From Klebsormidium nitens (taxonomy: Eukaryota; Plantae; Klebsormidiophyceae), in NCBI GenBank assembly GCA_000708835.1, contig DF237165.1, forward strand, positions 73,573 through 137,572: 64,000 nucleotides of DNA, in the 5' to 3' direction. Under the pieces are notes generated by a model, which ran no database searches, was not told where the DNA came from, and worked only from the letters and a program-made list of their open reading frames with translations. Below, in pieces: positions 11,792 to 31,583 of this stretch. The translations under genes and the position numbers were made by a program. Numbering within the stretch: the stretch's first letter is position 1; each line of letters begins with the position of its first letter.

Positions 11792-14700
11792 ATGACAGGG
11801 CCCCAGGTGGCGACCGTTGGTGAGGGCACAAGGTGGACAGGGGCTCACATGGCTTGTCTGATCATGACAGAGGTCGACCAGGTGATTGCGATGATGAGGC
11901 AGGACGCACAGTGGGCTGATGTTCCAAGGAACCTGGTAAGCTTTGCGCCTTTGCCATATCAGTGCTTCAAACGCGGGATGATGACAAAGGGAGAGTCCTG
12001 TGTTTTTGGAGGAAGTATGTGGGTACTGAAGATTGTCCATTGGTTTTGACGCCAAAAGTCAAGCACTTCCACCAGCTTGATGTGTCCTGCGCAATTCAAA
12101 GGGTCGGTTGGGGATTTTTTTGGAACCTGAAGCTGGCAAAACAATTCAGCCTTAAATATTTTGGTGAAGCAGAATTGTTGCTCTCTGCGCTGCTGTCGTT
12201 CAAAAGTCTCTGATTTTGGGTGGCACTTCTTGTTATCAGTTTTTAAAGACATCTCAAACTCTAGGCAGAATTCGGGCACGCTTTTGGGGTGACTACACGT
12301 TTTGCTGGAATGGAGCAGTCAACATATTGCAGTCATGTCGATGCAGAGTTGAGATTTTCGAAGCTTGTTGACTATATTGCCAACGTGTTGTGCTGCAAAC
12401 GGCCAATGCGATATCCGTCGTTATTGATTTCCTGGCCATTAAACTTCTAGAAACCCATGCCAATCTTGTTGTAATCAATGACAGTGGTCTTGGAATGATA
12501 TACCGGTCTCATTCATCTTTCTTCTATCGCAGGACGAGGCTGTTTGTGGAGGCCCTTTTCTACAGGAATTCAAAGATCTAAGTAGGGACATATTCGCATG
12601 GAAACGTAAGCGATTGTGTTCCCTTATAAAAATTTCAACGTGCTGCCTTATTTACTGCTGTTACTTTGACTGCCTCATGTGTTGCATAAAAACACCAGCT
12701 TGGTCATGAGCCAATTCTGTATGCACTGAGGTTCTCTGGAACTGGTGACCAAAAGCAAGGACCGTGATTCAAGTTCTTACAGCAAAGCGGTGCCATGTGC
12801 GTGCTAGATATTCATGTGTGCACTTTACCGGTCTCTTCCGGTACCAGCTCGTGGGAGAGACATTGACATGACCTGGACAATCCTACAAGAGTTGGATTCC
12901 TGTTTTTGTGATCGTCAGATTCCCCGTATAATTATACTTATTCCTTACGAGTGGAAAATTGATGGGTTGATGGTGTCAGACAAATCATCCTCGGTCCAAC
13001 CTTTAATTACTTCAAGAAAGACTTCGCCCCGAGAATGCTACTTGCCGCCAGCTCAGAAGTCTGCGACTAGCTTTTGCTCCTTGAAGAGTTGGCGCTGACA
13101 GCGTTTGCGTTTCTTGCAGATTGGGCGACAGTGAAGCCCATGGACTATCTGGCCCCTTTCCTTGGGCTGATTCGCTCCAAGGAGACAAGCGCCCCTGTCA
13201 CAGGAGTAGCACTCCTGGCAGTCTACAAGATAGTGACATTTGAGATGTTCCGTGAGTCCTCAAATTGGATGATTTTCTTTGTTTACTTTGACCTGATCAG
13301 ATTCTGCAATAAGCTCAATTGTGCAGAAGAAACAGTCGTTGAACAAACTTGGAAGTCATGAGGGTATGTGAGAGAGCTTGTGACAAGCACTTATTTTTGA
13401 CCCATTGAACTTGGAACCGAACGGTAGGACTGTCACACCAAGGTGTAGCACAACGGAGATTCGTACTTCTTTTCCAATTTTTTGTAAGATTTTGGCTTGA
13501 CTGTACAGTGTGAGAGTCTATCTGTAATCCTTTGGACCAAATAAAGGTTTCAGCTGCTCTGTCGATTCGAGATGTAAAGACATGGCACCCATGTAACCTG
13601 AGAGTTAGTAGGTTTTGCATGTACATGGACCAAAGAGGCTGGGCACTTTCATGTAACGAAACACAAGAAGTAAACTTTTCCGAAGACTGACATCGTGCAA
13701 ATCCTTTCAGACAAGGAGTCGGTCGACGCGGCTGAGGCAATGCATCTGATCGTGGATGCGGTGACGGGCTGCGAATTCAGAGCGAGTGACCCAGCATCTG
13801 AGGAATTTGTCCTTTTGCAGATCGGACAGGTGAGCAGCGTCAATTCCTGCTGATCGTAATTCGGTGAACGTGCTGTCTTGTTCACTGAGTTAAAGCAACG
13901 CCTTCTATGTCTCCTGCCCACAAAATAAAAGCGGGAAGCGTCAAGCAACACATGGTGGGTTCCTGCCTTTGTCCACTTGAGATAGGAAATAGGAGGTACT
14001 ATAATGAATGGCAGCCCAGGCGTCACTTGAAAATCGAGTGGACTAGAGTGATCATCAATTCCATTTGTGCTCTGAGTAAAAGAGAAGGAGGGTCAAGGTT
14101 GGAGGGACTGTGATCTGTCCTCGAATCATTGATTTCGCAAAAGCGCGGTTCAAAACTTGGTCTTTGAAACTGTCCTTGTGCTCATCCAAGGAGTCAACCG
14201 CTGACGCTTCATTCTTTGCAGGTCCTGTTGGCGTGCCTCAGGTGCGGGGCGGGCCCGCTGCTGAGGAACGCTGACGTGATCAACATCATCAACACGTGCC
14301 TGCATGTGGCCTTCGCCAAAGGCAAGCTGCTGCAGCGCATGATATGCCAGACGATGCAGGATATTGTCCGTGCCATCTTCGGCAGGTGAGGCGGCTGGGA
14401 CAAAAAGAAACGCGTCGTCCACTGACTTCGGTCGCAGTGCGAGGGACAAGTCCAAGGAAATGTGGTTTTCAGAATTCGTACGCAGCGTGAGGCAACAAGC
14501 TAGTGACAATTGGAAGACAGTGCTCTTTGTTGAAGCATCTCTATGGTTCGATGCGAGATGTTCACCAGATGCCCAAAGTATCTCGGTGCTTCCAACTTAC
14601 GTTTAAGGTTTCTGTGCCCTCCTAGCAAGTTGCTAAATCATCACTCCTCGTCTTTCCAGGCTTCACGAATTCGGGCCCGCAGAGGATGGCCTCCCTAGAG

Positions 14701-17700
14701 TAGATGCCACGGATCTCGACACAGATGTAACCTCCTCGGGGGAGGCTACGGCTTCGGCGCCTGCCAAGAGCTCTGCTAGATCTGACGGGAATGAAAGAAC
14801 CGCAAACAGGACGGACGCAGGAATCCCTGTCCGGTCTCTGTCCAAGTCTTCAGACGGTCCAGCGGGAGCGTCCGAAACGGCCGATTCGAGCCGACTTGGT
14901 GCCGGGCCAGAAAGAGTGCCGGCGTCTGCGGAGATTGGCAATGGTCCGCAGGAGCTGTCACAAACGAGTCCATACGGCCTGCCGTGTCTGGTGGAAGTAC
15001 TTCGGCTCCTGTGTTCGCTAATTGTGCCCGACAGAAAGTCCTCGCAGCACGAGGTAAGCCGTGCCATTTGCAGCCCGTAGATTTCAATTCTCCTTAGGTG
15101 GCAGGCCTCCGCAAAGTCGGGAAAGGGCCTGTCGAAGCTGTGTCTTGATCGTCATCTCTCCGTTTCTCGTCTCATCAAAGTCGTCCGTTGCTTACAGATA
15201 CGCCTTTTCCGTAGGCTCGCTCCGACAGCAGCCAGAAACAATTTCACCGGGCTCGAACAACATCCGTCCGGTTGCCCAAAGAATAGCAATTGAATGCTGA
15301 CCCCTTCTCTGCTTTACAGGACCGAACTCAGTTTGGCCTGGCGCTGCTGAGCGCTGCCATCGAGGTCGCGGGGGGCTCCTGCGAGAGGCACCCGCGCATT
15401 CTGGCCCTGGTCACGGACGACCTGTTCCGGAACCTAATGCAGGCGGGGCAGTCGAGCAACCTGCTGGTGCTGTCGCTGGTGTCGAGCATCGTACGGGGGC
15501 TCTACTGGCACTTCAAGCGTCATCTCAAGCTGCAGATGGCAGCCTTCTTCGAGAACGTCGTACTTCGAGCCGCCCAGGTAGGGCCCGACTCAGTGGTTGT
15601 GGCGAACGGCATGCTCGCGCTGGTGGTCTCGTCTTGTTTCAGCATGTGAGAACGCATGGTCGATAGTTGATTGCCTGTTTGAGAAGCTCCCTCGACGACT
15701 AGCTTCGAAGCAGTATGTCTTTCTACTTGGCCATTAGCCAGGGCTATGCTCAAAGCCGCTTGTACCATCGTATCTAACCTTCCGTTCAAGCAGAGCGCGA
15801 AAGGCTCGCTTGGGCGTGCTTGACGTATCGGGAGTCAGTACGAGTAAGGGTGATGTTAGGATTGGATGTTCAAGTGATGGGCATGCTAATAGATATCATA
15901 TAGACTTGCTTTGCATGACCAGATGATGATGCCCACGTATTCCGCAGGGAGGGTATCACCAGCAAGAGGCGGCACTGGAGATCCTACAAGACTTTTGCCG
16001 ACAGCCGTCCTTCATATCTGAGATGTACGCCAACGCTGACGGTGACATCACCTGCGGCAACACCTTTGGTAAGGCCGGGCCGAGTTTTGAATTTGCAGGG
16101 GAGCAATTGGTCTTATCTATTTCGTGACCAAACGCCTCGTCTTTGCCACAAGAAGTGGATGATGCTTGCCGATACAAAGTGATTCTGTAACGAGCTTCTC
16201 TATAATAGATCCTCTGATGATTTGCGTCTTATTCCTGCTGGTATCTTGTGTCCGCCCTGTCCTGGCTCTTCCTATTAAAATTCGTGTAGACAAGTTATGT
16301 TGAAGCAACTCAGGTCATGACACTATTGGTCACCGTGGTAGAATTTTGAGAGCCCCGTGAATGAAATAGACGAAGGATCCGTGGTTCGGATGAACCGTTC
16401 CTTGTAGCTTTACAGCACGTAATCGAAGCCTTTCTTTTTGGCTCGCTGCAGAAAACCTGAGCAACCTTCTGTCCAAGAATGCTTTCCCAGACAAAGCCAC
16501 CCTCTCCGCGCTGAACCTGCTGTCTTTCGAAGGGCTGCTGGCCGTCGTTCAGTGCATGGCCGACCGGGCAGACAACGCGTCAGGTAATGCGTTGCACTGT
16601 CCTGCGCTCCTACCTTGTAAAACTGGTCGTGTATGTTCGGACACGATTTTCAGCGCATGTCCGAGTATGCATCTTACTCTCGACGGGGGTGTAAGGGGTA
16701 GCAGAGAGGTCCCAACCTCGTTTTGGGAGACGGAAAAGGTCTCGTATTCTAAAATGTTTCAAGTTACAAACTACGACCATCGCAATGCATCGTGGCTTCC
16801 TTTTCAAGGCTCTTTTGCTACTTTTTGAACGACAGTCTTTATTGTCAACCTCCATGCCTCATCCTGCAAGTACTCTCAAAAGTTTGCTTATGTCTCTGGC
16901 GTTATATGCCTTGGAACATACAACTTTGGAATGAAGAGACGAAGAGCAGGAGGCTTCACTTTGAAGCATAAGGGCACTCAAACGGTTCTCTCAACGTGTC
17001 TCGGCGCAGTCAGCGGCTCTTCGAGCTCAGAGTACAACCTGGCGGAGGTCCCGCACTTTTGGACCCTCAATTGCGACAACTGGGAGGACCCTGAGGTGTG
17101 GGTCGAGTTCCTAAGGCGGCAAAAGTATGTAAAGAGGCGGCTCATGATTGGAGCGGACCACTTCAACCGAGACCCCATTAGGGTGAGCCATCCTTCTTTC
17201 AGTGCCTTTTGGAGTCCTTCTTAGTCTAACGTGCCAAAGTTGACTCGGTAAGGCACAAGCTTCCGCGCGTTGCACCACTCTCTAGCACCAGCAAGAAGTA
17301 GTTCAGTGGCTACGGATTGTGGACTGTGGACTTCCTTGCATGTGGCGGAATTTGAATCTTTCAGGCGAGGCTCATTCTTCAGGAACAAGAGCACTGCGCA
17401 GATCCTCGTCCTTCATTAGTTGCTTACTGCAGAGCGACTTGCATTATAAAGAAGTCCTCTTCTTCCGATCAGAGCCTGTCTGCTAACAATCATATCATGC
17501 CCGTTTGCAGGGGCTAGAATTCCTTCAGAACGTCCACCTCCTTCCTGAGCAGCTAGACCCAGCCAGTGTCGCCTTCTTCCTGTACTTGACGCCTGGGCTT
17601 GACAAGGTTGGCATTCTCGACCAACTTTTTATGCAGAACAGCATAATCATATCTTTACTAGGATCTGCATGAAAGATGTGCACGTGTCGCATCGTCAACA

Positions 17701-20700
17701 AAGGGGCTTTCTTGTTGCATCAACTGATGCATTTGCGGCTTGTTCCTCTTGCTTATGAGGGGCGTCAAGGCCGCTTTCCCTCATTGCCGTTGTTTTCGAA
17801 GGCGCCCAGTCGGGTCGCCGGCTCTTGATCGTTGAGATATGTTACTGATATGTACATTTCGAGCGCTGGCTAAAGGACGACCCGTCGTAACAACATCTAC
17901 TCCTTCCAACTTGCAGAACGTTTTGGGGGATTACCTCAGCTCGTCTGACTCGTTCAACATCAGCATCCTGGAGTGCTTCACGAAGCAGTTCAACTTCACG
18001 GGGATGGCCCTCGACGGCGCCCTGCGCACGTACCTGGAGGCGTTCCGGCTGCCTGGGGAGGCGCAGAAGATCAGCAGGGTGCTCGAGTCATTCGCATCTC
18101 ACTACTACGAGCAGTGTCCACAGGCAAGGCCTAAAGCTGCAAGTGTGGTTGTTCCAGACCTGTGTGGTGCCAGAAACAGATGCCGCACAGGGAGTTTGCC
18201 TGCTGCTCACGAACGAGTTGTCCCGTCTGTGAACTTGTCTTTCAAACCGTTCCTCGAATGCGTTGTCCTCTGCTTAAAGCCCTTCGAATTAGATGCCGCA
18301 CAGGGAATTTGCCTGCTGCTCACGAACGAGTTGTCCTGTCTATGAACGTGTCTTTCAAAACGTTCCTCGAATGCGTTGTCCTCTGGTTAAACCCCTTCGA
18401 ATTGGTGGTCTCCTTCTGAATGCACGCCTCGAACGGCAACGTTAGTTTGCAGTTACATGATGCCAACGTGCACGCTTGTGTAAAATCTCTGGCGGATTTT
18501 GTCAGAGTGTTTACGTGCTCTATCTCCTCGGGCTGCCCGCAGGTATTTGCTCATGAGGACGTTGTCTCTGCGCTCTCACACTCAGTTCTCATGCTTAACT
18601 CAAACCTGCACACCAAAAAGGTGGGCGTACTCCCGCTTAACTTGTCTTTTCCACAGTAAAGGTCGTAGATTGCAGGCCCGTTCAGGAGTAGGCCACTTTC
18701 AACCCTTGGTCTAGTGAGTGGCAGCTTGGAAGTGCCGATTGAGGTGTATATGCAGGCATCATGGTGACCGCAGATGCTGAAGTTGAAAGATCCAACGGCT
18801 CTCGTGAGGCCTGCAGATGATAATGTGCTCCTATTTTGTCTTTTGAACGAAACCTCAAATTCGACAGTTTACCGGGTAACGTTCCGAAAGGTGCCCGATA
18901 GGCTTCAGCATGTTATCCCTTTATAAGGCAGCTGCTTATTCTGACGTCGAGTGCCGTTGCTGTGCCTAGGTAACGCGGAAGGTGACAGAGGAAGACTTCA
19001 TCCGAAGCAATCAAAAGATCAACGTCGGGAAGGAGCTGCCTCGAGAGATGCTCACACAGCTGTACCGGTCGATTGCAGAAAACGGTGAGTAAGCAGCACG
19101 ATTCAGAGCGATGATTGATATCCTCAGCTGTGAAGCTTCGGGTAACAAAAGCGAGCAACGTTTCTAGCACTTTGCTTCTTCCTACAAGACGAGAGTTGGC
19201 ATGCAGAGTGTAAACTTGCGACGGGTCTTGGAAACTGGGTCATGAAAAGCTGAATGCTCTGACCTTCTTCCATCCCGTCGAAGGGTACCCGCGGACGGAA
19301 CAAGGTACTGAATTGATAGTGGCAGCTTAAGCACGTATTGTCGAATTGAATGCTATCTTTCCATGCACCCAGCGGCGTTACTATATAGATCCTCGGAGCC
19401 CAAGCAACCTGCCTACCTGAGGCCTTCCTTTGCGACTCTTTTCTTCGCGAAAGGACGATCCTATACACGAATTCCCTGGTCTGCCAGAAAACACGCTGAG
19501 CCCTCATCCTTGCTTGTCGCAGAGATCCCCGTGTCGAGCGAGAGCCTGGTTGCAGAGCCCAGCATGACGCACGGCCGGTGGCTAGATTTGCTGCGGCGCT
19601 CCCAGGCCACGACGCCCTTCCTCTCCTGCGACCCAACCGAGCCGCTGCTCGACCGCGACATGTTCTCCGTCATCTGGGGGCCAGCGATCGCAGCCATCTC
19701 AGCTGGTAAGGAACCGTCTCTGCTTCCAAGAACGGGGTTAGTAGGCCCGGTGCATTTTCAGCCAGATGCAAACGGTCGCATGGGTCGTTTGACCAGAATC
19801 CAGTGAGCTGCAGGAGCACCACTTTCTCCGAGTGACCCTATTGGCAAGTAAAAAAGGTGGTATTAATACCAGGAGTGTAATTATTGTGATCCTTTCAAGC
19901 CCTTCGACATAGGGTGCACTCTTCGGTCCTGCTGCGCTGGCTGTTTGCTTTGACAACAGAAGGCGTCTCGTCTTCACGTGATTTATTGCCGCCTCGTGCA
20001 AAAGGGTTGATGCTGCACAACATCTAACTACCGCCTTCTGCTTGTGCCGCAGTGTTTGATCACGCGGAGAAAGCGGACACGCTCCAGCAGTGCGTGGCCG
20101 GCTTTCTTGCCGCGGCCAAGATCTCAGCGGCGCATCATATGAGTGACGTCCTGGACAACCTGGTGGTTGATCTCTGCAAGTTCATCACGCCCTTCGGCGA
20201 TGAGAGGCCTGCCACTGAGAACACCAAGGTGCGTTTCAGGCAGTCGTTGAGATTGCAATTTCCAGGTTTCATCGACGGGCATATTCGAGCACTTGAACAA
20301 GGATGAGCGGGAGCGGGCCACCGTCGTCACAAAGGATTTTGGAAATGTCGAGAAATCGCTCTTTGCTTTCATGTTGTTCTGAGCATACCGTCCAATGAAG
20401 TATTCTGAGTTAGTGAGTTCTGCATGACCCAGTGATCGGCCTGAAATTCTCGTCCACATATGCAAGCATGTCGATTCTCCGCTGCACTTGTGCTACATCA
20501 GATTCCACGGGCTTGTGCCAACAAGCCTTCGGCCTCTGGCGATGTGCAGGCCCGCATGGCAGCTACCGCTGTTTCTGAGATTGTCGACCGTCATGGTGAC
20601 ATGATCCGCAGCGGGCGGCGAAGGTCCATCGAGTCAATACTTCGACTGCACAAGCTGGGCCTACCGTCAACCACGAACGACCCGTCACAAGATGGTCAGA

Positions 20701-21062
20701 ACCAGCCCAGCGACAGCCGAGAAGGTTGGTGTCTGGCAGCACTGCTTTCTGTGCGTCCGGAGTAGATGGAAACGCAGGAAAGGAGGACAAGCGAAGTACA
20801 CCAGCTGTGTGGGGCCTACGATAGCGTCCGAGTTGGATGACTCGGCCGCAGGTCTTCAATGCTCGATCTGGGTAATCACGTCGTTTTCCAGTGTGGGATC
20901 CTAGGACTCGTCATGTGATGCGTGGGAGTGCTCGTATAGCATTGGTTTGACTTTTGAGAGTGTCCGTGCAGGGTTGTCCATCCTTGCCAATGCTGCTGCA
21001 GCGTCGGTTGTTGGCATTGAGATTGTGTCGGCCAGTCGGAACCGTGGGGGCAGCGCAGACAC
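11792..21062 (+). CDS. ARF-GEF module: 3'-truncated paralog of the downstream GNOM/GBF1-like gene (exons 1-18)
   Basis: Exons: 11792-11935, 12533-12605, 13120-13251, 13711-13829, 14222-14385, 14660-15053, 15320-15577, 15948-16068, 16452-16583, 17010-17182, 17511-17606, 17917-18123, 18543-18620, 18970-19084, 19523-19705, 20053-20228, 20550-20724, 20972-21062. Each matches the equivalent exon of 32612-47753 in phase; 14 of 18 have identical length and the other four differ by multiples of 3. Sec7 [10 protein letters not shown] is intact. Confidence 0.92.
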
Positions 21063-24000
21063 GTAAGATACTCCATACTGACGACTTAGCAAGCCCCAAA
21101 AGTGGTGGCAAATGCTGCAAAACCTCAGGCCTCCGGTCAATTGTCCCGCCATCATCTTGCTCCTTGCTGGATGCTTGCGCCTGAGGATACGTTGAATGCT
21201 TCATTATGTCTGCTTCGAGAACGGTCACAAGAACGTTGCGTCGATTTTGGCGTCTATCAACAGCTGCAGCTTTTGCTGAAAATGTATTTTTTCCAAAGGT
21301 CGAAGCTGAGACGAAATATGTTCCCCCGCAGCAACCGTGACCAGGAGCAGAGCCCCATTGATGCGCAACGCGGCTCTGCACGTGGTTCACTGAAGACCTC
21401 CCCGCCCAAGGCACGGAACGCGAAAGCTCTAAACCCGCTTACTCAGGCGTACATACCCCCAACCAGAAGGGCGAGCGGCTCACAGGACCTGCCCGCTTCA
21501 AAGCTATCCAACCTTGTGGAGAGTAAGACCCAACCCCAACTCAAGCCCCGGATCCGGACCCCATCTCCAACCCCAACTCAAGGTCATATCCAATCCAAGC
21601 CCCAAACCCAAACCCCATCCCCAAACCCAATCCAAACTCAATTCCAACCCGCTACCCCCACCCAAACCCAGCCTACCGTCAAAGTTCCTGAGCCGTCAAA
21701 GAGCGCGCTCAATGCGGATTCGCCCTCTTGGCAGCCCCCGTCAAAACTGGCCGCATCAGCCCTCAAAGGGTTAGCGTTGGGAGGAGCTCAAAACTCCCTT
21801 TCCAAGTCGCTGAGTATCCCAAGTGCGGACGCCCGGAAGAAGGACACGGACTGGGACGTGCAGCTTCCGGACGGTTTCGTGGAAGCGGCGGTCAGTCCGG
21901 TCGGGATATCAGACTCTGCATTTAACCTTTTAGGTCCGGAGGGGGAAGGAGAGAAAGGGGAAGCGGCGGTGAGAAGTTCGACTGGTGCCACGGAGAGAGA
22001 AGGGGCGGATGCAGCGCCAACGTCGGATGGGGCTAAGAACCAATCGGACAGCGTGGACCTTGGGTACGACGACCTGCCCGAGAATCTAGACGGACTGGCA
22101 GATGACGACATGTCGAATCTGGACGCGGTTCTCAACGCCGTCCCCGGGTTCAATCTTATCTCAGATGACGAGGATGACGATGATCACGCAGAGCAGAGCG
22201 GAGGCGACCACGAAAACGGTTCAGATTCCCGCGCTGCTCATTTTCACGGGGCTCACTCGGCAAACGGAGGTCCAAATGGGAGGCCATCATCAAAGGAGAC
22301 CGGGAAAGGGTGGTTGGCCGTACTGGAAAGTAGAAAAGCGACGCAGGCAGAAACTAGTGGACGGGAGACTCCAATCGCAACGGAAGGGAAACAAATGAAA
22401 AGACAGGAGGAACCTGATATGAAGGCAAAGGAGGGGCGGAAACCGGACGAAGCAGAGCGGCGGCCAGCGGAAACAGCGGGACCCACTTGGCGGCAGGAGA
22501 CGAAGGCGCCAGAACCGCTGGAGTGGCGGAAGCGCCAAACGGCGCAGTCCTCTCATTGGCGAGATGACCGGCGGTGGACTCCGCCGGTAGACCCTAGAAA
22601 ACCGTTTGGGGAGGCGAATCCACTAAGCGCAGGCAGCCCTGCGGGTGGAGCTCCTAGGGGGGGCTTTGTGAGCCAGCTCATTTTGCAGCCGCCCGAGAAA
22701 CCGAAGCAGCCTCCGGAGGTGCGGGAAAGGCTGCCAGCTGGCATGGCACCTCGGGAGCCCTCTTCCCGGACTCCGCTTTTAAAAGCATTCAGCAGCCAGT
22801 TGGCGAGCGTCCCCACCCCCCCTCCAGAGGCTGGGCCTGCCGGCAGGCTAGCACAGCCCAACAACGCGGGCGCGTCTGTCCCGCCCGGCTTTTCCAAACC
22901 CCTTCCCGCCACCGAGCGTGCTCCGCCCGCTGTTGCCCCGTCCCAGCCAATATCGAGCACACGAGAAGTTGTGTCCGATAGCGAACCCCGTTCCTCCAGC
23001 CCGCTCGCTGGTGCGCCGCTCAGCAAACCCGGCGTCCCCTCTCGGTTAGTCCTGTCCCGGGTGCTGGTGAAGCGAACGGTCGTTCAGGAAGGACACAATC
23101 TCGGCCCTCCGGCGGAGTCGCCCGTTTGTCAGGATGCGGAGGTGCACGTGGATAAGCGGAGTCAGCTCCACCTCCGGGCAGTGGCGGAGCTTGGCAGCGG
23201 GCCGAACGGACAGCTTCAGGATCTGCCGTCCTGGCTGGGACGTCCGGTAGACCTTTCGGACGGTCCAAAAGGCTTCTTCGAAGCCGTTCCTAAGGTGTCA
23301 GATGACGTTTCGCGGCCCGTATCTGGTCTGTCCAGCTCGGAAAGACGAAGTGCAATTGCGGAGAACCCTGCTAGCGCAGGGGCGCCAGAGGGTGACACGT
23401 GGAGGACGGGGGGTGGGGAGCGGCAAGCGCAGCAGCCGTGGCGAGTGCCGTTCGTTGAGTCTGGTGGAGGCGAAACGAAGCTGAGGGCTGCCGTGGTGAG
23501 CTAGCGTGTTATTTTTCTGGTCGTTCGAGGTCCCGGCCAAGTTCTGGCACTCAGATGCATGCTAACAGGGTCCAAGTCGTTGGGAAGAGTTTAGCTTTCT
23601 CATGTCTCACTTCCTGATTGTTGCGTTCCTCTTTTTCTCAGTGTCCGTGAGTCCCCGCTGGTTGTCGTTCCACCAAAAAAATCCGTGTGACTGACTTGGA
23701 AGGTGTTTCTTTTTCGGATGGATTGAAGTGCTATTCCGACTTTAACCAAAACATTCTGGAAAGTGATATACACTCAAAAGGTTTCAGTGAGGGACTGCCG
23801 AAGGGGAACGTGTGCAAGTTATTATGTGCCAACTCGATACCAAGTGCAGGTTTCTCAAAGAGATGCTGCTGCGCTCACTCTGAGACATTTGTCCGTTGCC
23901 AAAACCGAGGAAACCCTTCGTTTGATTTTGGGCCTGTGAGATCCGCAGCACGTTCTGTATAGAGAACTTGCACTTGTAACGTTGCTCTTCTCCAGGTCCT

Positions 24001-27000
24001 GTCTGAACCAAGAACGAGACACGTCTCTTAACGCTACTCCTTGTGGCATTGCAGGCGTCACCGCCGCCCCCTCCCGTCGTGCACCCCCAGGAAATGCTCC
24101 GCCGTCTCCTGCCCCCAGGCGCACATCCGCCACTTACGTCATCCACTTCCGACCCCGAGCCCTTTTCTCAAGTCGCGCTCAACCCCCGGCCAGACAGCTC
24201 CCCGCACTTCGCTTCCCTTAATCCGGCAGAAAACCGCGGCTCGTGGGTTCCCGCCCCACAGTGGGCGCCACAAGTCCAGTCCCGCCCCCCTAGTTCAATT
24301 GCGCAAGTGCCATCTGCATTTGGACAGCACAGCCAGGCAATGCCCGACCAGGAGCTCAACTACTGGTCGAGCACTAACCACGACCTAAACCCGCCACAAG
24401 ACTCACTTCCGCCAGGATCGTCCGGTTGGCCTGGGGAGGTGGATGCTTTCCGGACGGACCAACACCCTGCCGAACACGGGAACAGTGCCAACAACCTCCG
24501 AAGTCACCCCCTACAAAACCACCCCTCCTTGGCACCACCAGCGGCACATTACCAGAGCGGATTCGCCCCCCTACCGCCTACCAGTGTCCCGAATCCGCAG
24601 ACTCCCCCTCTGAGCGCCCTGCAAAACGCCCCGCACATCCGCAAGTTGCAAGCCACCGTTCAGGAGCACTTCCAGCGGACCGGGGGGCTGAAGAGCCCGG
24701 GAGAGGTGCCTTCGCCAAACAGTCAACCTGCGGAGTTCCCACCTTTTGGAGCAGCGTACAAGCCGGAATCTCCTGTAGAGAGGAGCTGTTCGGGAGGAAG
24801 AGACGGAAGTGGGGGTAGGTGGGGCGACAACACTGTACCTGGCTATCAGCAACAGGCCCAGTACCCCTCCTTCAACGGGGAAGACTTCAGGGGTCCGGAG
24901 GTGGGGCGAAACCATAATGGGGGGCAAGAATACATGGTCAACCAAGCCCCCCTGCCTGAGCTTTTGGGTCCTGCTGGCTCTCTGCTGCCGAGAGAGAGGC
25001 CGTCTCCTTACTCTTCCCATTCGGAGTACGATCACGTGGGTCCGTACGCCCATCACCCATTTGCGCACTCTGAACTGCCCCGCGAAGCGACTCAGGAATC
25101 CATGGTGCTTCCGCCAGAGTACCTCCATGGTCGGCCGTCAATGTCGCCAGAATTGCCGACCGAGCGGTCCCCGCAAGGTGGAAACGCAGCCAGTAGAGCC
25201 CCCGAGAGGAAAGGGGCGTACAATCCGTTGCAACAGCAGGTGGCGCCTCAGGAGAAGGCAAAGCCAAACGAGGACTCGGTGTCGGATGCGGACCTGCAAA
25301 AGCTCCTGGATGACTGTGCCTTGCTGGACGCGTCTCAGCCGGAGGCGGGTGAGCCAGTCGAAAGAGGGGCATGGGGAATCTCCGTCGAAGCTCCCGCTCC
25401 TTGGCGGGACGTGAGAACGGCTGAAATCGGAAACCTTGATAGGGTGAGGGAGGGAGAGCGGCTGAATGAGGCGGCATTGGCGGCTCACACGGCGGGCCGT
25501 GTTGGTGCGAATGGGGCCGTGCGGACAGCCGCGCAAATGGTGGCTGGCCGACCGGACGAGGAGCAGTTTGAGGCGGATATTAAGGCCGCCATGGACGTGA
25601 GCTTGGAAGGTACGGGGACGGCAACACATTTCGAAAGCTTTATGGGGGGTCGCCGTCTTGGAGCACACGTGTTTCTGGTTTTTGGAGTCAGGTGGTCGAG
25701 ACGCGGCAGCAGGTGCAAGAACAGCTTGTCCAATTCGGATACATCAAAGTCGAAGTGTTCTGGTTTGGCCCTTATTACTGCTTTGAGATGGTGCTTACGG
25801 GTCATTGCGAGCTTTTCATTCTGCTTTCTCCGTTTTCGAGCTGAGTTGTAGCCCTTGCCGCTAGGGATTCAAACACGTTCTCCCCAAGCTTGAGCAGTTC
25901 GCGACGTCAGAATACCCACATACCATAGAGCAAGCTTTCTACCGTGCTGCAAACAGTTGCACCTCTGGCAGGTTTAAGGTCCCGCGTCAACGTCCTGAAG
26001 AAGCACTTGTATGTACGTGAGTGCTCCACCGTCTTTCGCTTCATTGGCAAACCATTCCCGTTTGGATGACTGACATCAATCCCCCATCTGCACAGAGTAC
26101 CGGTCTCAAGGAGGAGCGTCGCAGCGCCCAGCAGCACAGACGAAAAGCTGGCCCTCGGTGCGCGTCAGCGCCGCCCCCAAGCCGGCCGTGGGGAAGGGGC
26201 TGGCCAACCGATCGGGGGAGTACAACTGCTTCCTCAACGTTATCATTCAGGTGAGCTCCACATCTTGCTTTACCGCTTCCTGGGCTGTGTTTAGTCAGCG
26301 CACTGCGCCCTTGTTGGTTGTGTCCTTTCAATGCAGTCCAAGAGCCTGGTCAGAGTGGGTAGCAATCTATAGATCGGAGGAAAACCTGTTCTGTTGCTGT
26401 TTTGCTTTTAAGGTATCAGCCAGCTCCTTGCCTCGTTGGGGTGTTGAGTTCACGGGGACACATTGGTGCTTCTCGGTTTAAGAGTCCTCGTGAGCATACT
26501 TTGAGCCGACCTCTACCTAGGACGCACCCTGCTCTGCTAATAACCTTCCTAGCCCATCCTGTGCTTGTCGATCACAAAGGGACACGGATACACTAGACTG
26601 ACCATGCAGTCGTTGGAGTGTTGACTAAAGCCCATTCCCTTCCTCTCCCTGCAGTCGCTTTGGCACCTGGTCCCTTTCCGGCGGAACGTGATGTTACATC
26701 CCGTCCCCAAGCGCCCGCCGTCGGATGCCCCGCTGTACGTGCGCCGCCAGGCCGTCTTGCACGGCCTGAAGGGGATCTTCAGGGCGCTCTCTGCAGACGA
26801 CGGCAAACCCACAGCGGTGCGTTCCCTAAGTCAAATTCCCTCACACTCTCTGAGCGGTTCGATAACTGGTGCACAAATATCTAGGACGGCTAAGTATTGT
26901 GATGAGCGCACATTGGGTTGGATCTGCTAGGTTAGGTGGCGTTAGGAACGAACTCACCTCTCATTGAAAAAGGGGACGAGGTAGGTAGTGAACGTGGATA

Positions 27001-30000
27001 CGCGGGCGCCTTTGCTGCTCTTCCATTTGTAGCACAAGGTGTCGTAGCCGTTGTTTATTGGCATGTTCTTGAGGCATGTTTAAATGCACACAAGCGTGAC
27101 CCCTACATGTAAACGCGTGCACGAGAAATTGCAAGGAAGGGCTGCGTCATGCACTTTCGTTTTCCGCTGTGGCTCCACTTTTTTGGAAACCGAAAAGGTT
27201 CTCGGAGAGGTCCGTCCAAGCTTGAATAGGTTGATTGATGGAAGGGAACCCCCGAGAAATGGTCATCGCTTCTGATGCAGTAGACGTGGTAAGTTGCTTC
27301 CTGCATGGAACCGTACTCGTCATCATCATGGTCCCCAATGGTTATACCAGCGATTCTTGATGTACATCACTTAAAGCGAAGGACACGCCTTTGACATTTT
27401 CCTACGCTTGGTGCGGTGCAGGTGGATCCGTCATCTCTGCGGACAGCCCTCCACGACGCGCACAAAGGCAGCGACCTTTTCCAGATGGTGAGCTCTCCCC
27501 GCTCGCGCCAGCGTCTAAGCTAAGACTTCGCACCTTTGGCGGCGGATATGCAAGGGAGCTTACGGGTGACACATGTCCCAGCATGCTCTACAAGACTGGA
27601 ATTCATGCTTTGGGCCAGTCTTTCAAACCGACCCGCAGTCTGCTGTAGACAGCGTGCTGGCGCATGGGAACATGCCAGCAAGCACTCGCATGAGTGGCGA
27701 TCAGAGTCGTCGATCAGCCGCATCACGCTGCAACCGCGGGCCTTGGGCTGTTTGTTCGTGGTTTGAACTGCAAAGATGCAAGTTGTTGACCCCCTTTGCG
27801 GTGCTAGCACAAGCGGCGGAGCCGAGCAGACCACTTCACGAGTCTCCCAGGCACATCTGGCCCCTGACTTCTGTTGCTTAGACTGGCCGTCAGCAGCCTG
27901 AATCGCAACCACTAATTGACGTTCAATTTTCGAGCACCCGTCACGTTTTTTCCTGCTCAACCCCTCTCTCTGACGCCCCCACAGGAGGAGATGAATGACG
28001 CGTCCGAGGTATTGCTCTCCATCTTCGGCTGCCTGCACGAGGCGCTCCAAGCGCCCGTTGTTGCCTCCCCTCCAAAGCACGCCGACGGCCTGCTGCCCAC
28101 CCCCTCCAATAGCGCGGCCTTGCGTAACAAGGCGACCGACGGTGCGTAAACAGCCGTCTCCCTGGTCTGTCAATGATTTGCACGAAAGTGCTGTGCAAAT
28201 CTTTGCCCACGATTTCAGAGGCTCATCTCTTGCCCGCATTCAGCATGCGGGAGTTGGCAGCTTTCCAAGACGCTCCTCTTGCGGGTAGGTAGACCTGTGT
28301 CAGGAGAAGCGAGCACTTCCCAACGGTTGTCTTAAGTCTTAAGTTGCAAATTGTCCTTTTGACGGATTTATACCCATTTTTGAGAGGGACTGGTCAATTT
28401 CACTTGGATTGTGCTGTAACCGGCAGAAGCGAGGAGCGAAAATCAGCAACGACTAACATCGTGTCCGCACAGGAGAGCTAAACTCTTTGTCTTCTGCGCA
28501 CAGTTTGCCGCGGGTCCTGCTTCGTCCACGACCTGTTTGGGCTCGACATGGTCGAGTTCACGCACTGCGGCCTCTGTAACAAAAGTGAGGCCCCCAGACG
28601 GCTTCTTCGCTTCATTCCTGCTCGATTCTCACTGGGTGCCACCGGTTCTTAGCTGCCGGGCGACTTTTGGGAGGTTGAGGTTGAGAAGAACTCGCAGCCT
28701 GTAGGACAGCCACGGGAGCAATCAATTGACGACCGAACATACTCTCAACGTTGCTGATGGGAGTGATTGTGCTGCTGTCAAACTTTCAGAGCGGCCTGGT
28801 GACTGTCGGACCCTGCACTTGAATGTGTCTCTGCATCAAATGTTTCTCTGTGTAGTCTTGGCAGACTCGAATAAGCAGCCGGTCTGGCCGAAGGGGCTCG
28901 TGAGATTTGAAACTATTCAGTCACGTTGAAGCCAATGTGCCCCATTCAGTCACGTTGAAGCCAGTGTGCCCCAGCGTTTTCATAAAGCGCACATGCTTTG
29001 CAGGGACCCACGACTTACACTACCAGCAGTACTTCCACCTCGTCAACTGCTCTGCCCTCTCGGACGTTGCGGTACGTCTCCGTCCATCTCTTTTCCGTTG
29101 CTGCTGTCCACATATGAACGTAGGTTGAAGTTCTCCCCAGCATGCACAATCGTTCAAAAGCAGGACTTTCTTACTTCCTTGCTCCATATGGCAGGTACTT
29201 TGATTGTCTAAAATGGAAAGACACTTTTCCATTCTCAATCTTCCTTTTCTTTAGTCGCCTTAATATCAAGTGAGAATTAGCCATTAGGGCCATGTGAGAG
29301 TTGCCGTTGGAGTCATGTAAACTTGTCAAAACAAGCATGCGCCAAGTTTTTGAAAATCCCTTTGCTACTTGGCGCAGGTGCAGTCGCCGGGTCGGCCGTT
29401 TGCGCCGCTGCTGCGCCGCGTTCTCGACGGCTCCACTCCGCTGCGGCCGTGCGACAAGGACGAGGGCGGCTGCGGGGAGCCTCTCCCCACTACGCACGTC
29501 CTCGACAAGGCGCCGCAGCTCTTCACCGTTGGTAAGTGGGTCCTGGTGTCGCTTCCCCTATTCTCTTCTTTGTCTTCGTCCCTCTCCCATTGCCTGGTAC
29601 GGTGGGCGCCTTCCAACTCAGAGTATTCTGTTTCACCAGAATCCCGTCCCTCAGGCGGCTTTCTGGTGAAGGCGTATTGTTCTATTTTGGATTGTCGGGC
29701 GTTCCACAGTCTATAGAGGTGTTCCACCCGACTTCGCTCAAACTGTGACTCACTACAGGGCGCCCTATATCGCCGAGGAGCATAGCGCTGGTAGCTTAGC
29801 ATTCGGGGCGGACGAAAGATGGAGAATTCAATCCCGCTTCTAACTTCGTGACAGCTGGTGCGAACCTTTTGTTCAAAAAAGATGCGCTGTGCTTTACGCA
29901 AGTTAAATATTTTTGGAACGAAAAATGCGGTATGACTTGTAAAGAGAACTAGCCCTGCTTGACGCTGCTACTAAGACCAGTCCCGCCGCCCGCTGCAGTT

Positions 30001-31583
30001 CTCGTGTGGGGTAGTGCCCAGGCGTCGCAGAGCCAGGTTCGCTCAGTCGTCAATGCCATCAGCACGCAAGTGAGCATCCGAAGCCTGTGCCCGGCCTTAC
30101 CTGAACAACCACTGCTTCGACAAAAACCTCATATTTATATAACGATTCCTATTGGAGGGAAGCTTGGACTGTCAGTAGCTAGAGTCCTGAGTCAGCGACC
30201 GAGGTAAACTTATTATGTTGCGAGGTGCACATCTTACTTCAAACGCCAAACGAATCTGTACATCTGGCGGTAAGGGATCTCTTGGTGGATCCGTAGGTCA
30301 GCCGGCTGTTTCTGCTCAGCTTGCGCTGCGGTTGCGCCCTGTTGAATGCCCTTGTCCTGTTTGGGTGAACGCTTCGGTGCTTAAACTCGAAGAGATCATA
30401 GCTGGACCTCAGTGGACCCTTTGGGGAGAAGACTACGACGATATATCGGTCTTTTCTTTCCAAGAGTTTTGCTTGACGCGGCTGTTCGCACCACAGATTC
30501 GCGTGTCGGAAATCTTCCCCGACCTGAAGTACAGAGGCCAACACGCCCTCCGCTGTGTGGTGAGCACGCGCGCAGGCTTCAACACTCCTGTTGCTGTATT
30601 CGCAGTTGTTCGTATGACCTGGCGCTAAACCATTCTTGACGTCTTTGTTAACGAGCTTGCCACCGGGTTTGGGAAGTCCGTCGCAATGGATGGTCCAGGA
30701 TTTCTTGCACGCAAGTCTGAATGAACTAGGACCTGTGGTGATGGCAACTTGAGCTTTCCGTGTGCCATCTTCTCGAACGTCTCTATTTTGATTGAAATCG
30801 TCATCCGGTACAGAGTTAAACAGCTCAGTTTTTCTCACACGGGCTGCTCACGCGGCATGTGTATCGCACATGCCCCCATGTTGGTCGCCGGTTATTGGAA
30901 GCGCTGCTCTCGGGTCCTCGCTAGCTTCCGGACGGCTTCTTTTAGTTCGCGGTTCATGAAGGAAAAGCGTCCATTAAGCTGGCCGTGGTGCTTTGCCGCA
31001 GGTGTGTTACTACGGGCTGCACTATTTCGCATTCGCTTTCAGCGCCAAGGCCCAGCAGTGGCTCCTTTTGGACGACACCCACGTCAAGGTGACCTCACGA
31101 ACACAGCGTGAACTTGCACCCACATACGGACGGACCCAATGGTCACCCTAAACGAGCAAAGAGGAACGTCTGGTGTCAAGTTTTGTGACTGCTGCTCATG
31201 CGCTTGCTTGCCCCATTTGAAGGAAGGGTTTGCATCAAACGACCCTCAAGAGTGCGGTATGCAGTTTCGGGTCCTAGCTAGAATGCATGTCAATGCACTC
31301 AGTGGATTGCTGCAACCGCACTCTATAATCTGGTTTGGGGACATTCCTAACCATCGACCTGTGTTCTGCCACCGTCTTTCGTCTCGTCGTCTTTCGGTCA
31401 CTGCAACCGCACTCTATGGTCTGGTGTGGGAACATTCTAATCGATATGCATTTTTCCACCGTTCTTTCGTCTCTCAATCATACTCTCGTTTGCTTACAGG
31501 TGGTAGGCCCGTGGGAAAAGGTGGTTGAGCAGTGCACGAACGGCAGGCTGCAGCCGTCGGTGCTGTTCTATCAATCGCTCTGA
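11792..31583 (+). CDS. Predicted chimeric gene: GNOM/GBF1-type ARF-GEF (DCB-HUS-Sec7-HDS1) fused to a disordered linker, UIM-like motif and USP53/54-type peptidase C19 domain; ~2565 aa, 31 exons
   Basis: The 18 ARF-GEF exons total 2831 nt (phase 2), ending at donor AC|GTAAG 21062. The next strong acceptor TTCCCCCGCAG| at 21331 continues in the correct phase into the long ORF. Total 7698 nt with no internal stop. The junction is predicted, not transcript-verified. Confidence 0.7.
18178..18403. repeat. Direct tandem duplication, 2 x 113 bp, intron 12 of the ARF-GEF paralog
   Basis: Units start AGATGCCGCACAGGGA at 18178 and 18291 and are highly similar through CCTTCGAATT. Confidence 0.9.
21332..31583 (+). 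CDS. Disordered Pro/Gln/Gly-rich region plus USP53/USP54-like ubiquitin C-terminal hydrolase (peptidase C19) module
   Basis: Exons: 21332-23495, 24055-25609, 26096-26250, 26655-26816, 27422-27487, 27985-28141, 28504-28584, 29004-29071, 29378-29531, 29999-30069, 30497-30559, 31002-31088, 31500-31583. Cys box KGLANRSGEYNCFLNVIIQSLWHL, EMNDASEVL, Zn-type HCGLC and CDKDEGGC, His box VCYYGLHYFAFAF, WLLLDDTHVK, C-terminus GRLQPSVLFYQSL-stop. If it is a separate gene, the start would be the ATG at 21318. Confidence 0.9.
28915..28972. repeat. Tandem repeat, 2 x 29 bp (intronic)
   Basis: ATTCAGTCACGTTGAAGCCAATGTGCCCC followed by ATTCAGTCACGTTGAAGCCAGTGTGCCCC. Confidence 0.9.
31310..31470. repeat. Imperfect tandem duplication, period ~91 bp (intronic)
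   Basis: CTGCAACCGCACTCTAT recurs at 31310 and 31401, with similar following sequence (TCTGGT...GACATTC/AACATTC...CCACCGT...CTTTCGTCTC). Confidence 0.75.

Follow-up and report, generated by a model that had tools for sequence, protein, structure and literature searches.

The closest described analogue of the gene reported here is hominoid USP6/TRE17, a chimera of TBC1D3 and USP32 that acts in traffic between plasma membrane and endosomes and whose dead TBC domain binds Arf6 (PMC12065817). As for the two component families, the DCB-DCB interaction of GNOM-type ARF-GEFs is ancient (bioRxiv 10.1101/2025.06.03.657657), membrane recruitment of mammalian GBF1 requires HDS1 and HDS2 as well as HDS3 (PMC6398479, PMC10512945), and USP53 and USP54 are K63-directed deubiquitinases (PMC12037411). 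We found no description in the literature of a Sec7-USP fusion of the kind described below.

Within the window, the whole 64,000-nt stretch of DNA analysed, lies a real, lineage-specific gene of Klebsormidium nitens, a green alga; it is expressed at the RNA level and comprises 31 exons encoding a predicted protein of 2,569 aa and roughly 275 kDa (Table 1). Its predicted product runs from a GNOM-derived DCB-HUS-Sec7-HDS1 part (aa 1-944), the first two-thirds of an ARF-GEF, through a disorder-type linker to a C-terminal USP54-like deubiquitinase domain joined in frame, linking two membrane-sorting activities: a vesicle-traffic regulator and a ubiquitin-removing enzyme. An earlier note, made from the sequence alone, had read the locus as a truncated GNOM duplicate that lies next to its intact parent and continues in frame into a USP53/54-type gene; that reading stands, on RNA across the junction from four studies, an open frame, an omega of 0.32 and USP54 as the only match among solved structures. 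Taken as one explanation that includes the mechanism proposed below, we consider this account probable.

Like USP6, the chimera appears to be a young, lineage-specific gene in which a USP domain is preceded by part of a small-GTPase regulator. Unlike USP6, it carries Sec7 with DCB, HUS and HDS1 rather than TBC, a USP of the USP53/54 rather than the USP32 type, and it belongs to another kingdom. Whereas USP6 arose via duplication and translocation of two genes, the chimera draws on a neighbour's tandem duplicate and has a 1,239-aa linker.

A truncated tandem copy of a GNOM-type gene

A GBF1/GNOM-type ARF-GEF gene is duplicated in tandem, and the upstream copy retains exons 1-18. Comparison of translated positions 11000-32000 with 31000-64000 (tblastn) returned 18 colinear exon-sized blocks, at 11774-21065 versus 32594-42558 and with 40-86% amino acid identity, bearing out the proposed duplication of parent exons 1-18 at 11792-21062. 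Splice sites were picked independently in each copy and then compared; as claimed, they occupy homologous positions with the same phases, including a GC donor after exon 12 in both copies. The indels likewise agree exactly with those first listed (exon 6, 394 versus 865 nt, -471; exon 8, -15; exon 9, -9; exon 16, -9), all other exon lengths being equal. The 157 aa by which the DCB-HUS linker of the fused copy (exon 6) falls short of the parent's were lost from the fused copy, because the parent's orthologue in a relative (L005, 84-98% identical) has the long form.

Residues 1-944 correspond to the parent exon by exon, as a paralogue with 68.5% identity. Between the copies, exons show ~20% nucleotide difference and introns are unalignable: blastn matches were limited to exons and no more than 26 nt of adjoining sequence, with none in introns or the 5′ flank, confirming the reported absence of intron similarity. 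GNOM exons 19-26 had been described as absent from the copy, and nothing within 10000-32000 resembles them; a search of the junction intron for a remnant of parent exon 19 also gave nothing significant. The parent's own exons 19-26 were modelled by a chain of splice-site and codon scores.

Pfam recognises both Sec7 (PF01369) and HUS (PF12783) in the fused copy. Its Sec7, at aa ~555-750, matches PDB Sec7 domains at E of about 1e-17, with the FRLPGE Glu finger aligned and intact, and its HUS exon matches Gea2 and not Sec7/BIG. The chimera thus shares HUS, Sec7 with FRLPGE and the HDS1 region with GNOM, GBF1 and Gea1-2; it lacks HDS2-HDS3, ~640 aa of the parent, and has 1,625 additional C-terminal residues.

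Table 1. Features of the chimeric gene and its parent (window positions; P and L numbers denote sequences of the relatives).
Feature	Positions	Strand	Basis and remarks
Exon 1, ATG 11792, aa 1-48	11792..11935	+	Paralogue of parent exon 1 (32612-32755), equal in length and phase
Exon 2	12533..12605	+	Paralogy to parent
Exon 3	13120..13251	+	Paralogy to parent
Exon 4	13711..13829	+	Paralogy to parent
Exon 5	14222..14385	+	Paralogy to parent
Exon 6, DCB-HUS linker	14660..15053	+	Paralogy; 471 nt below parent exon 6
Exon 7, HUS domain	15320..15577	+	Pfam PF12783 E=1.9e-12; PDB Gea2 7uro_A E=8e-4
Exon 8	15948..16068	+	Paralogy; -15 nt vs parent
Exon 9	16452..16583	+	Paralogy; -9 nt vs parent
Exon 10, Sec7 domain start	17010..17182	+	Paralogy to parent
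Exon 11, Sec7	17511..17606	+	Paralogy to parent
Exon 12, Sec7 core, FRLPGE Glu finger 18043-18060	17917..18123	+	Pfam PF01369 E=7e-25; GC donor inferred, as in parent
Exon 13, Sec7 motif 2	18543..18620	+	Paralogy; 3′ end is loose end of RNA contigs
Exon 14, Sec7 end	18970..19084	+	RNA contigs
Exon 15, HDS1 region	19523..19705	+	RNA contigs
Exon 16, HDS1 region, -9 nt vs parent	20053..20228	+	RNA contigs, paralogy
Exon 17	20550..20724	+	RNA contigs
Exon 18, last GNOM-derived, phase-2 donor	20972..21062	+	RNA contigs; weakly paralogous to parent exon 18 (42465-42555)
Junction intron, 269 nt	21063..21331	+	GT..AG; removed in each of the 4 runs
Exon 19, first linker exon	21332..23495	+	RNA contigs; P0001/P0002 alignments
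Exon 20, second linker exon	24055..25609	+	5′ part in RNA contigs; donor conserved with L001
Exon 21, USP Cys box GEYNCFLNVIIQ at 26215-26250, Cys2228	26096..26250	+	USP54 8c61_A; conserved in L001, L002
Exon 22, USP	26655..26816	+	Conserved with L001/L002
Exon 23, USP	27422..27487	+	Relatives' alignment
Exon 24, USP	27985..28141	+	Relatives' alignment
Exon 25, USP fingers, CxxC	28504..28584	+	Donor AAAA/GTRAG conserved with L001
Exon 26, USP	29004..29071	+	Relatives' alignment
Exon 27, USP, alternative acceptor 29378	29384..29531	+	79-84% identity to L001/L002
Exon 28, USP	29981..30069	+	Relatives' alignment
Exon 29, USP	30497..30559	+	Relatives' alignment
Exon 30, His box CYYGLHY 31005-31025 (His2520), LLDDTHV 31065-31085	31002..31088	+	USP54 8c61_A
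Exon 31, stop 31581-31583	31500..31583	+	Relatives' alignment, frame
Intact parent GNOM/GBF1-type ARF-GEF, 26 exons, 1748 aa	32612..47753	+	Exons 1-18 by paralogy; only exons 19-26 model-level
Parent exons 19-26, HDS2-HDS3 part	42821..47753	+	Absent from chimera

The splice junction in RNA

The joint from 21062 to 21332 lies inside single RNA contigs of 5.3-6.1 kb, in four runs from four studies, with GT..AG borders and 0 mismatches; a check of the fusion by spliced RNA had been suggested, and it was positive in all four studies. The contig blocks (about 18968-19083, 19522-19704, 20052-20226, 20548-20722, 20970-21062, 21332-23494 and 24054-24700+) pass from the junction through the linker and on into the USP part, and the predicted junction peptide ..GGSADTNRDQEQSPIDAQR.. 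matches the model reading. An uninterrupted frame of ~2565 aa had been anticipated; the 31-exon model has a CDS of 7710 nt, or 2569 codons, in one open frame whose single stop is at 31581-31583. Misassembly is a classic hazard with tandem paralogues, and a GNOM fragment could in principle have been wrongly joined to an unrelated USP gene, but such an artefact is hardly credible: the join, with its clean intron removal, recurs in RNA contigs whose assembly was independent of the genome, and copies this different in exons and introns would not collapse.

Could the locus instead hold two genes, with a truncated GEF that stops at 21064-21066, a USP gene whose start codon is ATG 21318, and joined RNA that is only a minor read-through or conjoined transcript? 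An unspliced junction intron does lead immediately to that stop, the ATG is in frame 14 nt before the acceptor, and assembled contigs under-report rare isoforms. We nevertheless regard this arrangement as very unlikely. The spliced form is the only one assembled at the junction, and depth in 21063-21331 is zero in 4/4 runs, whereas forms retaining intron 13 or intron 16 were assembled in the same stretch at 2-14% of main depth; a start at 21318 would moreover be a truncation, since the gene of the relatives has ~550 more N-terminal residues. A minor truncated-GEF isoform of the fused gene could exist, because Logan contigs drop rare variants.

Farther upstream, exons 1-12 were modelled from paralogy alone. 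Between 25 and 34% of the words of 11000-18700 are present in the RNA runs, about the exon fraction, and one contig extends from exon 14 back via exon 13 into exon 12 (loose end 142 nt); among the assembled RNA contigs, no single molecule reaches from the first exon to the last. Contigs of three runs break off at 18968, the point at which a minor form retaining intron 13 diverges, so an internal start with an N-terminally shorter product may exist.

The linker-USP body and its relatives

The region announced as ~1240 disordered codons is a linker of 1239 aa, 75% of whose residues are P/S/G/A/E/Q/K/R/D/T. At the end of exon 20, from 25558, stands a conserved acidic motif, EEQFEADIKAAMDVSLE, which looks UIM-like by pattern alone and gave no Pfam match. 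The C19 domain that follows, described earlier as complete, spans 11 exons (26096-31583) with Cys box, His box and DD motif, and none of the catalytic residues Cys, His and Asp is missing. USP54 (8c61_A) was the sole PDB match both for Cys-box exon 21 (E=0.49, catalytic Cys aligned) and for His-box exon 30 (E=6.1e-6; weak Pfam UCH match, E=0.077), through GKGLAN..NCFLN..IQ and CYYGLHY..LLDDTHVK, respectively; no other solved USP matched. For exons 22-25 and 27, PDB searches with single sequences or with profiles of three sequences returned nothing relevant, and a Pfam scan of ten USP exons left 9/10 without a match, so the USP53/54 assignment rests on two exons and motif reading. Most exons are too short or too diverged to score alone.

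From Cys box to stop the chimera measures ~353 aa, compared with 350 aa in the crystallised USP54 chain. Its catalytic domain stands at the extreme C-terminus and not, as in USP53/54, at the N-terminus, and other sequence takes the place of the Cys-rich stretch that follows the WHL motif. USP53 and USP54 have long C-terminal tails, which the long disordered non-catalytic region of the chimera recalls.

In two related metagenomic taxa (P0001 and P0002), the nearest relatives among those sampled, the same linker follows zf-CCHC: their N-terminus of ~550 aa, with at least five CCHC zinc knuckles, occupies the same large exon as the linker. Homology to the chimera begins near 21540, in exon 19. 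One relative's locus (L001, with P0001) is colinear with window positions 21540-31590, and in two others (L002 and L003, with P0002) similarity covers the linker from about chimera residue 1535 onward and extends to every USP exon. Each of the 11 USP exons has an orthologue in the relatives, in colinear order and with 54-93% identity, and several splice positions coincide; the USP domain compared with L002 gives an omega of 0.20 (constrained). These genes thus have conserved linker blocks and USP exons in common with the chimera, which has an ARF-GEF module and no knuckles; no CCHC knuckle occurs anywhere in the window. The relatives' gene is flanked by an aminotransferase gene and a ZCCHC24-like gene, and no GNOM lies within 10 kb upstream of it, nor downstream within 8.8 kb (L003) or 4.1 kb (L004).

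Since the relatives' USP gene has a CCHC N-terminus, a form of which the earlier note was unaware, the event amounts to an N-terminal module swap. An ARF-GEF module with its promoter would have replaced a zinc-knuckle N-terminus, the ancestral state being drawn from two metagenomic taxa that are close to each other, with no outgroup. Synonymous divergence was 0.69 between chimera copy and parent and 1.07 between parent and L005 (difference, 95% CI 0.13-0.74), where dS near 1 is close to saturation and gene conversion between tandem copies could make the duplication appear younger. This divergence suggests that the GNOM duplication, and hence the fusion, postdates the split from the relatives, which would make this a young natural fusion.

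Divergence and proposed role of the GEF-derived module

Lineage-specific residue changes number 83 in the fused copy versus 3 in the parent (~28-fold). Sec7 motif 2 is heavily remodelled (LMLNSNLH versus IMLNTDQH in the parent), with its hydrophobic M-L-N core retained, and 15/28 residues around it, in the ARF-contact helix, changed on the fused-copy branch. Branch omega is 0.32 (95% CI 0.20-0.66) for the fused copy versus 0.02 for the parent, ~17-fold faster, and at a branch dS of about 0.35 none of the 18 exons has acquired a frameshift, a stop or a lost splice site. The dN/dS check thus sides with purifying selection over pseudogene decay, as first argued from the preserved splice sites, the in-frame indels and the dissimilar introns. 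Since the fusion, judging from divergence, the copy appears to have lost 471+15+9 nt in frame and to have concentrated its residue changes on the ARF-contact helix while purifying selection continued.

The fast GEF part, with its excess of unique changes and three in-frame deletions, and the loss of HDS2-3 could also be read as promoter or leader capture only, the 944 GNOM-derived residues being a tolerated, slowly decaying extension without a function of its own. We find this improbable, given an upper bound on omega below neutrality, the intact exons at that dS, and HUS and Sec7 cores still 75-84% identical to the parent.

Another reading, that of the earlier note, is a bifunctional enzyme, whose Sec7 would be fully active in ARF1 exchange and whose USP would be an active K63 deubiquitinase, in cis on one membrane patch, coupling ubiquitin removal to coat nucleation for recycling. 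Compatible with it are the intact Glu finger and motif 2 core, the three catalytic residues, purifying selection on both halves, the K63 direction of USP53/54 (PMC12037411), and the binding of K63 polyubiquitin on yeast cargo by COPI, the coat downstream of GBF1-type GEFs (PMC5663479). We hold it possible but doubtful: the chimera lacks HDS2-HDS3, which GBF1 requires with HDS1 for membrane association (PMC6398479, PMC10512945), the GEF part has both its raised omega and its altered ARF-contact helix, and the exon with the USP54 S2-site position, examined for K63 specificity, gave no alignment. The suggestion that one polypeptide might both strip K63 ubiquitin and nucleate the ARF coat is somewhat weakened by the missing HDS2-HDS3, the 83 versus 3 changes and the 15 around Sec7 motif 2.

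By inference throughout, we propose that the chief role of the GEF-derived module lies in targeting and dimerisation. Its DCB would associate with the intact neighbouring GNOM and HUS/HDS1 would contact membranes, bringing a USP, presumably of the K63 type and held by a long flexible linker, to ARF-GEF membranes, where it could trim ubiquitin off cargo or coat machinery. USP6 offers the best functional analogy, as a GTPase-regulator module reused for targeting. With its Glu finger intact, the module may still catalyse exchange on ARF, though the targeting model does not require this. At the residues reported by Peyroche et al. 1999 to set brefeldin sensitivity, the chimera reads H-S-N-V and the parent Y-S-D-M.

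A spliced, open-frame transcript across the GNOM-USP boundary

Three-frame translation of 11000-32000 against 31000-64000, in intron-rich eukaryotic DNA of ~52% GC, returned 18 colinear exon-sized blocks (11774-21065 versus 32594-42558) with 40-86% amino acid identity between the fused copy and its parent, the intact downstream GNOM/GBF1-type ARF-GEF gene. When splice sites were picked independently for each copy, with scores from a position-weight model that had been trained on confident introns, those ranked best fell at homologous positions and in the same phases. Exon lengths were equal except for exons 6 (394 nt in the fused copy versus 865 nt in the parent), 8 (121 versus 136), 9 (132 versus 141) and 16 (176 versus 185). 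By blastn, alignment of the two copies was restricted to exons plus at most 26 flanking bases, with no similarity in introns or in the 5′ flank and promoter, and parent exons 19-26 had no similar sequence anywhere in 10000-32000. An earlier note on this DNA had described a duplication of GNOM exons 1-18 with splice sites and phases kept, indels of -471, -15, -9 and -9 nt, dissimilar introns, loss of exons 19-26 and an in-frame reading frame free of internal stops, and our models reproduce each of these features.

The chimera model comprises 31 exons and 7710 nt, or 2569 codons closed by one stop; GNOM contributes residues 1-944, a linker (75% P, S, G, A, E, Q, K, R, D or T) occupies residues 945-2183, and the remainder is the USP domain. 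Exons 1-12 were modelled by paralogy only, and splice sites of the USP part were set by phase and by conservation with L001, a relative's contig carrying the orthologous linker-USP gene. The parent model has 26 exons encoding 1748 aa and a stop at 47753; its exons 19-26, placed by a splice and codon-score chain, have the least secure coordinates of all. Judged from modelled sites, intron 12 seems to be of the GC-AG type in both copies, with the donor CAG/GCAAG; the GT alternatives would insert 8-10 residues, which does not agree with the usual Sec7 spacing.

Coordinates of features in the window and in relatives' contigs
Feature	Fused copy or window	Parent	Relatives
Fused gene	11792-31583		
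Parent gene		32612-47753	
Disordered exon 6		35517-36381	
Intron 12 (modelled sites)	18124-18542	39454-39707	
Sec7 motif 2 exon 13	18543-18620	39708-39785	
Intron 13	18621-18969		
Conserved linker block	23040-23420		
Acidic motif, end of exon 20	25558-25609		L001 ~15940-16000
Exon expected to hold the S2 site	28504-28584		
Single stop of fused gene	31581-31583		
Interval from fused-gene stop to parent ATG	31584-32611		
Kinase ORF fragment, minus strand	4446-4877		
Knuckle-linker-USP gene			L001 10001-23391; L002 10001-23395; also L003, L004

Public RNA runs contained 63-69% of sampled words of 19400-23400, which equals the exon fraction, and 25-34% of words of 11000-18700, in line with exons 1-13 plus 5′ UTR. 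Assembled RNA contigs of four runs from four studies were then placed on 18800-24700, the stretch covered by the read-level check. In each run, one 5.3-6.1 kb contig joins 18968-19083, 19522-19704, 20052-20226, 20548-20722, 20970-21062, 21332-23494 and 24054-24700+, every joint being GT..AG with zero mismatches. The splice from 21062 to 21332, predicted in the earlier note, is thus present in all four runs. The junction intron had no contig coverage in any of them, and bin depths over 20967-21360 matched the exon fractions exactly; the predicted junction peptide reads ..GGSADTNRDQEQSPIDAQR. As expected of a fusion gene, a spliced transcript crosses the junction in four runs and one open frame extends over both parental parts. 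The longest contig runs 3069 nt past 24054 whereas the model needs ~2720 nt to reach its stop, so it probably covers the whole USP domain plus ~350 nt of 3′ UTR. A search for an eroded exon 19 within the junction intron gave a best local alignment of 40 against a shuffle maximum of 42, not significant and containing a stop.

Upstream, the loose ends of the contigs before 18968 carry the last part of exon 13 (..ATGCTTAACTCAAACCTGCACACCAAAA), and in one run 142 nt precede 18968 and reach into exon 12. Minor contigs retain intron 13 (depth 5-14 versus 69-99 for the main contig of the same runs) or intron 16 (2.1 versus 99), and the intron-13 retention branch probably accounts for the contig breaks at 18968 in three runs. 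One retained-form contig of intron 13 joins 18741 to 18815, skipping 73 nt (18742-18814).

Only ~1 kb separates the chimera stop from the parent ATG; about 350 nt of this would be chimera 3′ UTR, leaving a very short parent promoter region. On the other side, the nearest recognisable upstream neighbour is a fragmentary ORF in which Pfam recognises a protein kinase domain (PF07714, E=1.8e-14), unrelated to the chimera.

Domain content of the two halves

Within the ARF-GEF half, exon 12 carries the Sec7 core (Pfam PF01369, E=7e-25), with its FRLPGE Glu finger aligned to solved Sec7 domains in the PDB, and exon 7 carries the HUS domain (PF12783, E=1.9e-12). The sole natural PDB matches of the HUS exon were to yeast Gea2 (7uro_A and 8ezj_A, E ~8e-4), with none to Sec7/BIG, which modestly supports membership of the GBF1/GNOM (GBF/Gea) rather than the BIG/Sec7 subfamily. 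The putative DCB region is 63% identical to the parent N-terminus, with no Pfam match for exons 3-5; the putative HDS1 region (exons 15-18) is 68% identical to the parent, with no Pfam or PDB match for its single exons. HDS2 and HDS3 are absent, the transcript passing from exon 18 directly into the linker. The parent block after exon 18 we take to be the start of HDS2, by the domain order of GNOM and GBF1; the break then falls between this and the HDS1-like region, so that the chimera would keep DCB-HUS-Sec7-HDS1, has lost HDS2-HDS3, and is a derivative of the GBF1/GNOM family rather than a complete member.

The USP half consists of 11 conserved exons spanning 353 aa from Cys box to stop. Its Cys-box exon (avgkglanrsgeyncflnviiq), invariant in L001 and L002, had USP54 (8c61_A) as its sole PDB match, a weak one (E=0.49) with the catalytic Cys aligned. 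The 29-aa His-box exon matched the same structure and no other (E=6.1e-6), with CYYGxHY and (F/L)DDxHVK aligned, and was weakly recognised by Pfam UCH (E=0.077). In exon-by-exon Pfam and PDB searches no other USP exon scored, and exons 22-25 and 27 had no PDB match, either singly or as three-sequence profiles, so two scoring exons and a reading of the motifs make the USP53/54 assignment a reasonable one. Both USP53 and USP54 are catalytically active and direct their deubiquitinase activity at K63 linkages by means of an S2 site on the fingers (PMC12037411); the exon expected to hold this site (USP54 F161 / USP53 Y160) did not align with 8c61.

Immediately ahead of the USP domain lies an acidic motif, EEQFEADIKAAMDVSLE, that is conserved in relatives and whose sequence resembles that of a ubiquitin-interacting motif; no UIM match was returned there by Pfam. 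The best-conserved block of the linker (SRLVLSRV ... VDKR ... SWLxRPVDxSDGPKGF ... VSDDV; 46-50% identical to relatives) may be a set of short linear motifs. A folded domain was considered for this block and rejected on an AlphaFold2 mean pLDDT of 37, which means that the block is disordered or the alignment too shallow.

Module replacement, timing and selection

A word-index protein search with the linker exon returned only two relatives, P0001 (1304 aa) and P0002 (1334 aa), which share 83% identity and come from JGI metagenome contigs. HMMER, run with the 720-aa linker exon over the whole library, recovered P0001 alone and no model of the window's own gene. Two metagenome contig scans, which used the linker block and the Cys-box exon as anchors, found no relative; the protein word-index query with USP exon 27 gave short contigs only, too short to read the N-terminus; and the parent HUS-exon query of the same kind had P0003 as its sole match, with no second fused-type copy in the protein database.

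Both metagenomic proteins start with a CCHC zinc knuckle array (five stretches, Pfam E=9e-32), after which comes the linker also present in the chimera. Among the relatives' contigs, L001 is colinear with 21540-31590, comprising the remaining linker and every USP exon, while in L002 and L003 the match to the linker sets in at about chimera residue 1535 and again takes in every USP exon; homology begins ~70 codons into exon 19. In these contigs an aminotransferase class III gene lies upstream on the opposite strand, and in one a ZCCHC24-like zinc-ribbon gene lies downstream. No ARF-GEF similarity was present in the 10 kb upstream or in 8.8 kb (L003) or 4.1 kb (L004) of downstream sequence. Since the relatives start with knuckles and none was found in the window by tblastn or by the pattern C..C....H....C, the ARF-GEF module occupies the knuckles' place here. 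The parts are separate in the relatives, the USP gene being zf-CCHC-headed without a GNOM neighbour (L001-L004) and a parent-type GNOM lying on another contig, L005; in the window, the intact parent stands beside the chimera. Two close metagenomic relatives, compared without an outgroup, are the basis on which a zinc-knuckle head would be the ancestral state.

L005, a Logan genomic contig from a relative, carries GNOM exons 5-14 that are 84-98% identical to the parent and 50-85% to the fused copy. Over 450 aligned codons outside the disordered stretch (Nei-Gojobori, bootstrap intervals), dS was 0.69 between fused copy and parent and 1.07 between either copy and L005 (95% interval of the difference 0.13-0.74), values that are near saturation. 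Because dS within the window is lower than dS to L005, the duplication probably came after the split from that relative. The USP domain stands at the same level from L002 (dS 1.07) as the GNOM copies do from L005. Exons 6, 8 and 9 are long in both L005 and the parent, so the short forms are deletions in the fused copy. Parent exon 6 is a 288-aa disordered DCB-HUS linker exon common to parent and L005, of which the fused copy lost 157 aa.

Omega on the fused-copy branch was 0.32 (0.20-0.66), as against 0.02 (0-0.05) on the parent branch; the fused branch is therefore non-neutral, as the earlier note had argued in reading selection rather than decay. Lineage-unique residue changes numbered 83 in the fused copy, 3 in the parent and 18 in L005. 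They are densest in Sec7 (41/175 positions), reaching 15/28 around motif 2 on the fused-copy branch, and the exon 12 Glu finger is intact. Four motif 2 positions that we take to be determinants of brefeldin sensitivity read H-S-N-V in the fused copy and Y-S-D-M in the parent; the motif 2 changes suggest that ARF contact or brefeldin sensitivity differs in the fused copy. The USP domain is likewise constrained (omega ~0.20 versus L002), and the linker evolves fast save for a few conserved blocks. Evolution after the duplication is thus asymmetric, with strong relaxation or remodelling of the fused copy and not neutrality.

Proposed roles and significance

Membrane recruitment of mammalian GBF1 requires HDS1 and HDS2, and also HDS3 (PMC6398479, PMC10512945), and DCB-DCB pairing has been described as ancient in GNOM-type GEFs, the Klebsormidium nitens protein among them (bioRxiv 10.1101/2025.06.03.657657). 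From these properties we infer the role of the GEF module, and favour the view that, once truncated, it pairs with the intact neighbouring GNOM, touches membranes, or both; a K63-type deubiquitinase on a long tether would in this way be placed at ARF-GEF sites. Since the Glu finger is intact, some exchange activity may persist. The coupling of both activities in cis within one bifunctional polypeptide, as first proposed for this gene, is a less likely alternative that gains a rationale from yeast COPI, which binds K63 chains (PMC5663479). A two-enzyme machine, with an ARF exchange module that works by itself or in a heterodimer with the adjacent GNOM and is physically joined to a K63-directed deubiquitinase, we consider rather unlikely. 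If true, it would be 'Rosetta-stone' evidence that GBF1/GNOM-type coat nucleation and the editing of K63 sorting signals form one functional unit.

Gene fusions often show which activities work together. The ARF-GEF-USP fusion is expressed in every RNA data set examined and is maintained by selection. These observations suggest that, in the streptophyte lineage, the same membranes host both the editing of ubiquitin and the formation of ARF-dependent vesicles; such a meeting fits the reading of K63 chains on cargo by yeast COPI (PMC5663479).

No Sec7-USP or ARF-GEF-deubiquitinase fusion was found in the literature searched, and we rate the chimera as a new domain combination produced by a known route. 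Its nearest analogue is hominoid USP6/TRE17, a TBC1D3-USP32 chimera whose dead TBC module binds Arf6 and which acts in membrane traffic (PMC12065817), a likeness suggesting that a GTPase-regulator module ahead of a USP domain is a recurrent evolutionary solution. The locus also offers a dated birth of a new gene, with parent, fused copy and the pre-fusion state in relatives all visible and the asymmetry measurable, and a natural truncation experiment on the abilities of DCB-HUS-Sec7-HDS1 once HDS2-3 are gone. In a 2025 preprint only one GNOM-related gene is attributed to K. nitens (bioRxiv 10.1101/2025.06.03.657657), a statement that the fused copy would qualify. Separately, the two related metagenomic taxa encode an undescribed architecture of their own, with at least five CCHC knuckles, a ~1500-aa disordered linker and a C-terminal USP54-like domain.
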